Part shown: piece after piece, positions 13,720 to 64,000 of the stretch
Layout of the letters: each line of letters opens with the position of its first letter
Position numbering within the stretch: the stretch's first letter is position 1
Source: Phallusia mammillata
Taxonomy: Eukaryota
Direction: 5' to 3'
Assembly: GCA_965637545.1 (NCBI GenBank)
Contig: OZ281497.1
Location: 5,952,001-6,016,000 of the forward strand
Length of the DNA: 64,000 nt
The notes under the pieces: model-generated
Told to the model about the DNA's origin: nothing
Databases searched by the model: none
Seen by the model: the letters and a program-made list of their open reading frames with translations, nothing else
Program-made: the position numbers and the translations under genes

Positions 13720-16700
13720 ATGTTAAATTTTGTAATGTGTTTGGCTTGTTGTCTTGGAATAACACAAGCACAAACAGATTTGGTTAATACAACACATAAC
13801 CTACTAAATGCCGGTAAGTGAATTAAAAAATAGTTGCTCTGAACATTATAAGCTGTGCCTTGCGATATTAACGATAAATATCCCAATGTAAATTAGGTAA
13901 CAATTGGCGGTAATAATAACAATGCACTTATAGTTATATTTGCAAGTGTACTTGTTAAATTTGAGGTTAATTGTGGATACAAACTGCTTGTTTTGGAAAC
14001 TAACCTTTCGTTTTGAAATAATAGTGAATACAGAAAGTATGTTTTCATAACATTTATAGAAAATTTGAGCCCAATATATAGTTTTCTCAAACGATCTGCA
14101 TTTGTAATCGTTATTATGCTTCAGCAATAACCAATGCCGTCATAAGATACACAACGAAGCTTGTATCAGACGTAATGAAATTTGCCTATAGGCAAAAGCG
14201 TGTAAATAGAAGCGTAGAATGAGATTTGTCGTCAAAGACATGCAGATTTGCATTGAAGGCTGGCAGAAGCATTTTGGCCAATTTTCGTTTTCGACGATGT
14301 TTGTATTGTTAGCGAAATAAGTTTAAAATAATGATTTTATGATCCATTTGAACGTTGTTATATAATTTCGATGGCCTGTACAAACTACAAACTACAGTGT
14401 AATTAAAATATATTTTGTTGGAACATTACTCACGGATCTGTTCAAAACTCTTTTCATCAACTTAAAGATACCAAAAAACGACATGATTGGTTATCGATCT
14501 TTTAAGCATAAAATACGTTTAATGTGATAAGGAATTTACGTGCTCTGGCAACATTTTTTTCTTCAAAATATCGACAAGTCTTACTGCTGAATATTCAGTT
14601 GCGTTACGAAACCGTGTTGTTTTCCAGAAACTCCCTTTCCCCCCTTCGTGCTGGTCTAATAAATTCGGGGTTTACCAAGTTAAATGTGCTTGGGCAGTTA
14701 CGCATCGTTTAACATACTTGATTTTGGAACTACGCGTTTATGCTGAAAGTGCGTCTGGTCTAGAGAAAATGCACCTGCACGGACTGTAATAGAGCGTTAA
14801 CTTACAGTGCTACTTTTGATACAGCGCTACCAAGTTTCTGGCTTGGAAATTCCTGTTGTTCCAACGCCGAACTAATCGTGTTAAATTTCTTTAGTTAAGT
14901 GTGCCGTTTCTATACCTTCTAGACTTTACGCATGTCAAACAAGCCGCTAAATTTATTGTTAACAACTCATGACTTTCATACAGACTGAAATTCCAGCGGG
15001 CATAAAGTTATGAAACAGTAAATAAAAAAATCTATGCATCCATGAAAGATAGCAAGTGCCAAACTATAAACGACCTAATACATAAATTTGGAACTAGCAC
15101 TCTAACATTTTCCGTTGGAAGACCATAACATACATTAAATAGTACTTATCTCATATTTTGTTTCTGCAAAAGTTTATATTACCAAGACACGGCAAAGAAG
15201 TTCTATAGAATTTGCCGGAGACGTTGTACAAACGAGAGGAATAAATAATTCTTCTTGTTGTTTGTCTTCATTTGCGCTTATCCTTTTGTAGTTGTATTTG
15301 CTCCACCGCTAGCCCTAAATGGTCAGTCTGATATTTCAAAAGAAGGTACTTCGTTGGCAAACACAGTTGTTTTTGATTGTTTTACAGAAAACTATTGCAT
15401 TGAACCTTTTGTCATAAATTCCACACGCGGTTTCAGTACATCCCCATTGTACCCGCAGACTTACCCTCCTAATCTTAATTGTGAATGGAGAATTGAAGTT
15501 CCCAGCGACAAGGTTTAGTGTTTGATTGAAGTTGTTACTTTATTGGTTGTTTATTTTTTCGAAGATTGGGTGCATTACCCAACAGGGTTTTACTAAATGG
15601 CGTTTTTGTTGTAAAGCTGTCTAAAATTTTTTAGATTGATCTGTTTTAGAATTTGTAACAGCTGATAAAATGGGTTAGTGAAACTGGAGGGAAACCTTAA
15701 CTACCTATGAGATAACGTAAGCGGATTACCATCATCTTAATTAAGATAACATGGCTCACACAAATTTATATTTGCTGTAACACTAATTTATCGGGTTTGT
15801 TGTTTCTCAGGTCATTCACGTTACCTTTAGCGATCTTGATATTTTCGAATCAACTGATTGCTATCGGGACTACTTACAAGTCCTGGATGGTGTGGAAATG
15901 GTAATGTCTTTATTAAGCTATTCTAAAATGTAATAAATACAGTAAACCTCGGTTAATAACGGACCGCTCAAGTTGTCTGAATTAGGCGAAGATCTGGATT
16001 AACCTATCCCTTTTAACCGAGGTTTACTGGACTTTAGTTAAAGCCGTACTGCTTTATTCAACTTCATGCCCATGAATAGTGCACACAGTTTAAAACACTT
16101 TGAAGCATTAATTATAAGACGCCAGTCTTCTTATCTATGCTGGCCATTAACACGGTGTGTAATTCGAATTAATCCTTTTCTCCTAATGCTATATGTTGTC
16201 AAGCGACGTTTGTTTTCTTACAGTACACTGGAAGAAAGTTTTGTGGAACAACAAGCCCTAAAAACTTCACAGCTTTCAACAATACAGTCACCGTTCACTT
16301 TGTATCGAGCAATTACACCATTTACAGTGAGCATCGTGGTTTTAACATCTCCTGGCATACGACGGGTAAGAGCTAACGTACTTTTAATGTAAAACTTGCA
16401 GTAACGTTGACATAGTAAAGTTTGTAATATTGGTAATATTACTGTTTTCAAGAAGACAAATCTTTTTTTAAAAGTAAATTTAACACATCATTTTGCTCAA
16501 CTGCCTGTGAGGCAAAATTATTTACATGTACATGTGTTAATTGTAACCAAGTTGACAGTGATCTTTAGATTGCTTGTGCTTTTTTAGACCGTTGTAGCCT
16601 GGATGAGTACACCTGCTGGAACGGTAGTTGCATTTCTGAAACAAAACACTGCGACTTGGTGAACGATTGTATGGACAACAGTGACGAAATTGAATGTGGT

Positions 16701-63400: not shown

Positions 63401-64000
63401 GATACATTTAAGGTACTAGTGTAAAGTCCCACCAAACTGTTAAGAGGTTAGGGCCAATTTGGCATGGGGAGTTATATAGTTTATTATTTAACAACCATCA
63501 GACATAGGTAACTTCCAAGATTCGTTTTTATTGTATGATTTTTATTTCAATCTTTGCCTTATTTTTAATTTTATGTTTTCATCAACTTTCTAAAAATTGG
63601 TTAATATTTTTTTTACTTTGTCAGGCGATATTGATTGAATTCCTAGATTTTGACGTGGAATTTGCCTCAAACTGTATTTATGACTACTTGGAAGTTTACG
63701 ATGGAATACAATTGGTAAGTGTTTTGTTTTATTAAAAACACATTTGATTAGTTGACAAACATTTCAATAAAAAGTAAAAAGTATTACAACATTTGTGTTT
63801 ATCTTCCATTTATTTGGATCTCTGAGTTTCCGCAGGAAGACTACAGAAAAATTTACAACCCTACCTTTAGTGCGACTGCGATCTATAATCTACTAACCAC
63901 GGTAATTTTGTTAGATATCTGGAAGACTGTGTGGCAATAATCTCCCACCCAACTTTATTGCCTACTCCACAATATTACGCCTTGTGTTTCATACCGATTA
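51476..64000 (+). CDS. Unit C2 coding exons: CUB-LDLa-active protease-CUB-LDLa-inactive protease-CUB (continues off the right edge)
   Basis: Exons 51476-51600, 51887-51976, 52221-52362, 52574-52684, 52968-53029, 53554-53714, 54043-54135, 54398-54552, 54716-54873, 55302-55443, 55633-55656, 55735-55856, 56016-56099, 59133-59256, 59433-59546, 59751-59812, 59943-60094, 60157-60407, 61123-61268, 61573-61717, 62175-62201, 62739-62854, 63625-63714, 63915-end. All are open and in phase. Confidence 0.88.
52021..52102. mobile_element. Tc1/mariner-type micro-MITE, C2 copy
   Basis: CAGTAAAC...GTTTACTG flanked by TA on both sides. Confidence 0.7.
53147..53313. repeat. Foldback palindrome with intact hammerhead-like core, C2 copy
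   Basis: Same arms as 38201-38362; core CTGACGA-T-GACAA-cacagt-TTGTC-GAAA-CGTC-TG at 53227-53260. Confidence 0.85.
54907..55105 (-). mobile_element. ~200-bp C2-specific insertion, probable retroelement tail in antisense orientation
   Basis: Absent from C1 (GCCTTGTTGCGATC); flanked by a TGTTG duplication; the minus strand ends in a short (CAA)n run. Family not identified. Confidence 0.55.
56581..57434 (+). CDS. Harbinger Myb/SANT-like accessory protein, C2 copy (same frame break)
   Basis: Same structure as 41368-42221. Confidence 0.8.
57742..58888 (-). CDS. Harbinger DDE transposase, C2 copy, ~340 aa
   Basis: Exons 58888-58382, 58322-58069, 58003-57742; translation matches the C1 copy in the ORF track. 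Confidence 0.92.
60705..61095. mobile_element. hAT-type MITE, C2 copy
   Basis: TIRs CAGTATTTCTCAACC / GGTTGAGAATCACTG; TSD CTTTAACT/CTCTAACT. Confidence 0.8.
61828..62124. mobile_element. hAT-type MITE, C2 copy
   Basis: TIRs CAGTGTTTTTCAAC / GTTGAAAATCATTG; TSD TTGTAAAG/TTGCAAAG. Confidence 0.8.

Follow-up and report, generated by a model that had tools for sequence, protein, structure and literature searches.

We analysed a window of 64,000 nucleotides (nt) from the assembly of Phallusia mammillata (GCA_965637545.1, contig OZ281497.1, positions 5,952,001 to 6,016,000 of the forward strand). The window carries predicted genes for secreted serine proteases of the S1 family combined with CUB and LDLa modules, and here we consider whether they are expressed separately or as one transcription unit. 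Self-comparison of the window identifies three head-to-tail copies on the plus strand, referred to as B, C1 and C2 (Table 1). B is approximately 76–88% identical to the C copies, and C1 and C2 are 96.7–99.2% identical to each other. B itself contains four repeats of a 2.62-kb unit (23972-34218), with 90–96% mutual identity. The duplicated segment extends from approximately 215 nt 5' of the start codon to a point within the intron that follows a Thr/Pro linker exon. B, C1 and C2 arose when part of a single gene for a secreted CUB-LDLa-S1 polyserase was duplicated in tandem.

The copies share a common plan. A signal exon is followed by a CUB domain (three exons), an LDLa module (one exon), a 62-nt activation exon and an active S1 domain (five exons). 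The second half contains another CUB, LDLa and activation exon, a dead S1 domain (four exons), and units composed of a CUB domain and a Thr/Pro exon, of which B has four and each C copy a single one. The domains CUB, Ldl_recept_a and Trypsin were confirmed by Pfam on individual exon pieces. In such pieces both S1 types match PF00089 (E 4e-17 to 2.5e-4), and the N-terminal S1 exon matches the chymotrypsin, factor IX and TMPRSS2 chains. B, C1 and C2 each have the catalytic triad His57/Asp102/Ser195 in their first S1 domain, within the motifs AAHC, DIALL and GDSGGP. In the second S1 domain of each copy the motifs read SASC, DIAIV and GDEGGP (S/D/E), which renders it catalytically dead. An activation site, R/IVGG (the slash marks the cleavage site here and exon boundaries below), occurs six times, once per S1 domain.

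The exons of B were defined by open frames, canonical splice sites and phase continuity, resulting in a model of 36 exons between 13720 and 33801 with 1,387 codons plus 1 nt. In this predicted gene model a single open frame, whose splice sites are canonical, encodes two S1 domains; on that model, B by itself is a two-domain polyserase-like protein. The exons of C1 and C2 were placed by local alignment of each B exon. Exons 2-24 of C1 and 2-23 of C2 are open over 948 and 910 codons, respectively, and the window ends within the third exon of the CUB unit of C2. AG and GT are kept at every mapped exon (22-23 per C copy), and exon lengths equal those of B save for two in-frame differences of 3 nt. 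All modules (CUB, LDLa, activation exon with S1, and Thr/Pro exon) are phase 1-1, and the signal exon also ends in phase 1.

Junctions between the copies

The last Thr/Pro exons of B and C1 end at 33801 and 49269 in identical phase-1 donors (GTG CCA G/GTATAT). Read past these donors, the frame closes after GIYK at 33801 and after GIYIYI at 49269. The acceptors of exon 2 in the following copies, at 36456 and 51476 (tttcag/AAAACTATTGCG), are likewise in phase 1, so that G+AA encodes Glu, followed by NYCVEP. The read-through introns implied by these pairs are 2,654 nt (J1) and 2,206 nt (J2) long. Joining 33801 to 36456 and 49269 to 51476 gives a frame of 9,737 nt, or 3,245 codons, with no stop. 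It encodes 12 CUB domains (6+3+3), 6 LDLa modules (2+2+2), and 3 active and 3 dead S1 domains. An earlier note, made from the sequence alone, had pointed to these donors and in-frame acceptors and to the stops just past the donors, all of which we reproduced; its domain count, with R/IVGG at each S1 domain, proved exact. Its claim of an open spliced frame stands in that no stop interrupts it, but the length it gave, ~9.9 kb and 3,300+ amino acids, has to be lowered to the values above.

Alignment of J1 and J2 with the unit introns and with the sequence upstream of B reveals how the copies are joined. Both follow the unit intron until approximately 75 nt before the CUB acceptor and then switch to a copy of the B upstream region that starts approximately 215 nt before the ATG. 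The alignment thus recovers what the earlier note had described, that B and C1 have no terminal exon and that the unit intron is cut and fused to a promoter copy, although the cut lies nearer to the CUB acceptor than the ~90 bp it had proposed. J2 is a diverged copy of J1 (93.6% identity). Judged from the aligned sequences, the two junctions go back to one event that was later propagated, since their breakpoint is identical. Elsewhere, the intron that contains this breakpoint runs on to a CUB exon. The ancestral gene therefore extended further downstream, and the way in which the copies are built leaves B and C1 without a terminal exon. A downstream copy opens with its promoter, followed by a first exon lacking a 3' splice site. 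Apart from the approximately 215 nt of promoter and exon 1, everything between the copies recurs as intron at other places in the gene, and the sequence following the Thr/Pro donors is a spliced intron in units U1-U3.

Neither AATAAA nor ATTAAA occurs within 937 nt after the donor in J1 or within 1,170 nt in J2, and AATAAA is absent from the whole of J2. The density of poly(A) hexamers in J1 and J2 is not above that of B's own introns (2.45 per kb), in a scan that is not decisive in AT-rich sequence. Splice sites were evaluated with a crude, home-made scoring scheme. The Thr/Pro donors score 6.7, compared to a mean of 7.0 for real donors, and the exon-2 acceptors of C1 and C2 score 3.8, compared to a mean of 2.2. 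In C1 and C2 the donor of exon 1 has lost its G at position -1 and is weaker, with a score of 5.7 against 10.4 in B.

On these sequence features it is plausible, and in our estimate an even call, that B, C1 and C2 constitute one read-through polyserase transcription unit. RNA polymerase starting from the B promoter would find no terminator and would continue into C1 and C2. The last Thr/Pro donor, defined by its exon, would pair with the next available acceptor, which is that of exon 2 in the following copy because the first exons have no 3' splice site. The decaying first exon would be removed inside an intron of 2.2–2.7 kb, and the product would stay in frame because every module is phase 1-1. 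The resulting protein would be secreted, at least 3,245 amino acids long and continuing past the window, with the plan [CUB-LDLa-active S1-CUB-LDLa-dead S1-(CUB-Thr/Pro)n] in each copy. More tentatively, the gene may have been caught in the process of elongation. A partial duplication that included the promoter would have joined the three copies, and possibly others past the window end, into one transcription unit. Its product would be a secreted chain of more than 3,200 amino acids in which live and dead S1 domains alternate on CUB-LDLa stems, and the internal promoters and signal exons would be decaying as splicing skips them.

First-exon lesions, sequence constraint and alternative explanations

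Frame-breaking lesions in C1 and C2 are confined to exon 1, where each copy has lost a single base at a different place (near 34584 and 49985, respectively; Table 1). Both hit the one exon that read-through splicing would discard, while a dead gene should take its first lesions anywhere in the coding sequence, and this points the same way as the junctions. Inclusion of C1 exon 1 as an internal exon was considered and rejected, since a TAA lies 13 nt before the donor in the required frame.

The ratio of non-synonymous to synonymous divergence (dN/dS) between B and C1 is 0.20 over 812 codons at a dS of 0.29, and the B and C lineages have therefore both been constrained for long; on this ratio, chance does not account for the open frame within each copy. 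Between C1 and C2, dN/dS is 0.26, with 12.5 synonymous and 11.5 non-synonymous differences where neutrality predicts approximately 22:78 (P = 0.002). The same pair differs by 19 insertions or deletions (indels) in 11.1 kb of intron and by none in the 2,775 nt of exons 2 onward. With stratification by divergence block, 4.4 indels are expected in these exons and 0 observed (P ~0.012). For exon 1 the stratified expectation is 0.49 and the observation 2 (P ~0.09; crude unstratified P = 0.012). Since stratification weakened the P value to this extent, exon 1 looks neutral rather than especially mutated. As far as divergence between the copies records it, these comparisons show purifying selection on exons 2 onward of C1 and C2.

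Several observations weigh against a read-through unit, and we present them with the alternatives to which they belong. The in-frame joining is itself worth little as evidence, because every module is phase 1-1 and any splice from module to module would be in frame. A strong cryptic acceptor at 36267/51287 would yield GVFVAL followed by a stop. C1 intron 1, part of J1, contains insertions specific to C1 (34692-34823 and 35104-35434) that carry three AATAAA hexamers. Exon 1 of C2 keeps a second ATG (codon 6) that is in frame with the donor and precedes a shorter hydrophobic core.

The last two points bear on the possibility, which we consider unlikely but serious, that the copies are separate loci. 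B would then encode a stand-alone secreted protein of approximately 1,391 amino acids with two S1 domains, ending in the run-on TVPGIYK and polyadenylated at a non-canonical or distant site. C would have been independent until recently, with C1 now a fresh pseudogene and C2 either a pseudogene or working from its second ATG and ending beyond the window. The stops 4-6 codons past both donors, the hexamers in C1 intron 1 and the in-frame ATG retained in C2 are all in line with such an arrangement, as is the conservation of C exon 1 and its promoter relative to the neighbouring sequence. The exon-1 lesions may also be too recent for decay elsewhere to show. It would, however, leave both lesions in an exon that makes up approximately 3% of the coding length and attracts approximately 10% of the expected neutral indels. 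Moreover, a canonical poly(A) hexamer is missing for ~0.9-1.2 kb past the stops, where the sequence corresponds to an intron that is spliced in U1-U3, and B has held a dN/dS of ~0.2 through a dS of 0.29 without a stop-bearing exon of its own.

A further point against a read-through unit comes from exon 1. Its coding part differs between B and C by only 4–6%, compared to 12% upstream and 14% in the adjacent intron, indicating that C's own promoter and signal exon were functional, constrained or converted until the recent split of C1 and C2. The low divergence is compatible with a past in which internal promoters were active in addition to read-through from B. In a variant of the read-through unit, all three promoters would still fire and share a 3' end beyond the window, producing long (B), medium (C1) and short (C2) mRNAs, with secreted protein made only where the signal exon is intact. 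We regard such nested isoforms as improbable. The promoter copies are kept at 88% identity to B, C exon 1 was conserved until C1 and C2 split, and no terminal exon separates the copies, all of which speaks for this variant. Nevertheless, a stop now closes exon 1 of C1, and transcripts starting there could not be translated or would be subject to nonsense-mediated decay, and the exon-1 donors of both C copies are weakened.

The remaining reservations concern the divergence between C1 and C2 and the integrity of the assembly. This divergence is mosaic, at 0–0.4% over most of the length and 2–3.4% in 34290-35790 and 37290-39790 (C1 coordinates). The pattern suggests gene conversion, possibly from family members outside the window. 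The synonymous-rich differences may thus have been imported by conversion from another functional paralogue and not have accumulated in place. The single-base deletions could be assembly errors, and that of C2 falls within an A/T run. Taken further, C1 and C2 might be two haplotypes, or a collapsed and re-expanded repeat, laid out in tandem, with the deletions as consensus errors and fewer real copies. The 98.8–99.2% identity of C1 and C2 over 15 kb would agree with this, as would the A/T run and a 99.6% identical inverted copy adjoining an N gap, a sign that the assembly is not flawless here. We nonetheless consider an artefact very improbable. There is no gap between C1 and C2, their divergence is not uniform, and J2 is a diverged copy of J1 (93.6%) with an identical breakpoint. 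Random errors would rarely strike exon 1 twice and exons 2 onward never. B and C, at 18% divergence, are real in any case, and the finding centres on the B-C1 junction.

Neighbouring features of the window

The coordinates of the copies, their exons and the junctions are collected in Table 1.

Table 1 Features of the three protease gene copies in the 64,000-nt window.
Feature	Position	Strand	Basis or remark
B copy	13503 to ~34218	+	self-comparison
B exon 1: start codon and signal peptide	13720..13813	+	phase-1 donor CCG/GTAAGT
B core, 19 exons: CUB-LDLa-activation-active S1-CUB-LDLa-activation-dead S1	15388..23070	+	Pfam on exon pieces, exon model
B active S1	17049-19575	+	
B dead S1	20980-23070	+	
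B four 2.6-kb units, each three CUB exons and a 69-nt Thr/Pro linker exon	23998..33801	+	
B last Thr/Pro exon	33733-33801	+	
J1, putative read-through intron	33802..36455	+	truncated unit intron to ~34218, promoter copy from ~34290 (to near 34500), dead exon 1, C1 intron 1
C1 copy	34290 to ~49766	+	self-comparison
C1 exon 1, disabled	34503..34595	+	1-bp deletion leading to TAA 8 nt before donor; donor -1 G>C
C1 exons 2-24	36456..49269	+	exon 2 at 36456-36580; active S1 37947-40230, dead S1 44538-46475
C1 long second-CUB intron	40887-43919		
C1 single CUB/Thr-Pro unit (Thr/Pro exon at 49201-49269)	47534-49269	+	
J2, putative read-through intron	49270..51475	+	breakpoint as J1; no AATAAA; promoter copy near 49767-49980
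C2 copy	49767 to beyond 64000	+	self-comparison
C2 exon 1	49979..50071	+	1-bp deletion just after first ATG, giving MLNL and stop
C2 exons 2-23	51476..64000	+	exon 2 at 51476-51600; active S1 52968-55443, dead S1 59751-61717
C2 long second-CUB intron	56100-59132		

The 5' part of an older paralogue, gene A, lies upstream of the copies (5391-7838, plus strand). Its signal exon comes with a long Thr-rich extension and one additional CUB domain. Gene A is 69–79% identical to B and C, and continues with the first two exons of the next CUB before an inverted block truncates it at 8027. This 4.5-kb block (8027-12504, minus strand) is an inverted copy of B exons, 99.6% identical to 15901-20376, and contains the third exon of the first CUB through the second exon of the second CUB. 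One end adjoins an N gap (12505-12704), and the other corresponds exactly to the start of a B intron at 15901. It reflects either a very recent duplication in inverted orientation or a contig placed the wrong way round. A decayed relic at 13228-13339 (plus strand) resembles the first exon of the first CUB, with 70% identity to the copy in gene A, and sits approximately 165 nt 5' of the duplicated promoter segment. This relic is a hint of earlier duplications of a similar kind.

Within the copies, exons 2 and 3 of the second CUB are separated by an intron of 3,033 nt in both C copies and of 156 nt in B. The long intron contains open reading frames on the same strand (41365-41812 and also 41937-42218) with a Myb/SANT-like DNA-binding domain (PF13873), and the insertion is probably transposon-derived. 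The last 90-165 nt before the single CUB unit of C1 resemble the 3' end of the unit intron that leads from Thr/Pro to CUB (translation VVIVNN; 26527-26617 compared with 47435-47533). C probably once had more than one CUB-Thr/Pro unit, some of which were lost. An alternative in-frame acceptor at 15292, present only in B, would add 32 residues before the first CUB (15292-15387, plus strand). It is probably unused, its extension being closed by stops in C1 and C2.

Predicted protein and relation to known systems

B starts with a short hydrophobic, signal-like peptide. No transmembrane-like segment was found in the window, the best 19-residue hydropathy window reaching 1.75 inside an S1 core; the expectation of a signal peptide without a membrane anchor is thereby borne out for this stretch. 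The spliced-through product contains 76 N-x-S/T sequons in addition to the Thr/Pro linkers and, judged by these features, would be secreted and heavily glycosylated. A Cys in the activation exon precedes each R/IVGG site (SECGK/SDCGK), and the S1 domains contain the Cys122 motif PIC(V/L). These residues probably form a disulfide bond that keeps the cleaved S1 domains tethered. Counting back from Ser195 (GVGPC[H/Q]GDSGGP), residue 189 is Gly and residue 190 Pro, in a motif register and not a structural alignment. Asp189, the mark of trypsin-like (Arg/Lys) specificity, is thus replaced. Because of Gly189, the active S1 domains are probably not Arg-specific and cannot activate themselves, and would depend on another protease for activation.

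In an exhaustive HMMER comparison against 1.84 billion representatives, the longest exon (from the dead S1 domain) returned nothing above 44% identity. The best matches are remote vertebrate polyserases and TMPRSS9-like proteins (24–44%). By their names and Pfam content, multi-domain matches rank first only because domain scores add up. Phallusia mammillata itself seems to be absent from the searched protein collection. Giant polyserases have been predicted elsewhere, as in a gar protein of 4,066 amino acids that the query matched in 14 stretches.

The predicted product resembles a polyprotease of the polyserase or ovochymase type set on matriptase-like stems. The stem arrangement is that of matriptase and enteropeptidase, in which CUB and LDLa modules directly precede the R/IVGG S1 domain and a propeptide Cys forms a tether. 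Those proteases have a type II anchor, one S1 domain and Asp189, whereas here we find a cleavable signal peptide, no transmembrane segment in the window and Gly189. Compared with type II transmembrane serine proteases in general, the CUB/LDLa stem before R/IVGG is present and the N-terminal type II anchor is missing. Drosophila Nudel, likewise very large, secreted and modular, combines LDLa repeats with an active and a dead S1 domain and with glycosylated regions rich in Ser/Thr; it is not known to have CUB domains and is encoded by one settled gene. It shares LDLa modules and the pairing of live and dead S1 domains with this locus, a likeness of domain families. Ovochymase/oviductin proteins are secreted, with a signal peptide and a mix of S1 and CUB domains that includes non-catalytic S1 copies; ovochymase has approximately 1,500 amino acids and no known LDLa modules. 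The secreted S1/CUB mix with a signal peptide is common to both, and the likeness is one of domain families.

The vertebrate polyserases (polyserase-1/TMPRSS9, polyserase-2 and polyserase-3/PRSS53) also carry several S1 domains per polypeptide, some of them dead. Polyserase-1 has an LDLa module, as here, and polyserase-2 and -3 are secreted, like the predicted product. Sequence identity to these proteins is only 25–30%. In contrast, each S1 domain here has its own CUB-LDLa stem, with additional Thr/Pro-CUB spacers, and the multi-domain state would come from splicing across recent copies, not from one settled gene. The earlier note had taken it as established that ovochymase and the polyserases are processed into separate domains. 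Of the polyserases, this is true only of polyserase-1 and not of polyserase-2, whose domains remain in one chain (PMC1435904). The disulfide tethering predicted here resembles polyserase-2 more than polyserase-1 (PMC1435904). The secreted polyprotease ovochymase/oviductin of Xenopus and Bufo is cited in that study (PMC1435904).

Read-through itself has precedents in conjoined genes (cis-splicing of adjacent genes, cis-SAGe), which lie on the same strand less than 30 kb apart and join an upstream internal exon to downstream exon 2, as predicted here (PMC4450057, PMC2953495). Chimeras of same-strand neighbours favour this joining to exon 2 of the downstream gene (PMC4450057). B, C1 and C2 likewise follow one another on one strand at distances below 30 kb, and no terminator is apparent in the intervals. 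Unlike in usual conjoined genes, the partners are paralogous and the upstream copies are without a terminator or last exon, because of which read-through would be the rule and not an occasional side product.

If the junctions are not real, what remains is a young tandem family of the usual kind, two members of which have only recently become pseudogenes. If they are, annotators may wrongly split such clusters into three genes, two of them seemingly headless or tailless. What would be new is the way to giant size, by read-through from one young gene copy into the next while the internal first exons decay. The product would be among the largest S1 polyproteases known, and the locus would provide a datable example of protein growth, in which a phase 1-1 block is duplicated with its promoter, read-through becomes the default and the first exons decay neutrally.

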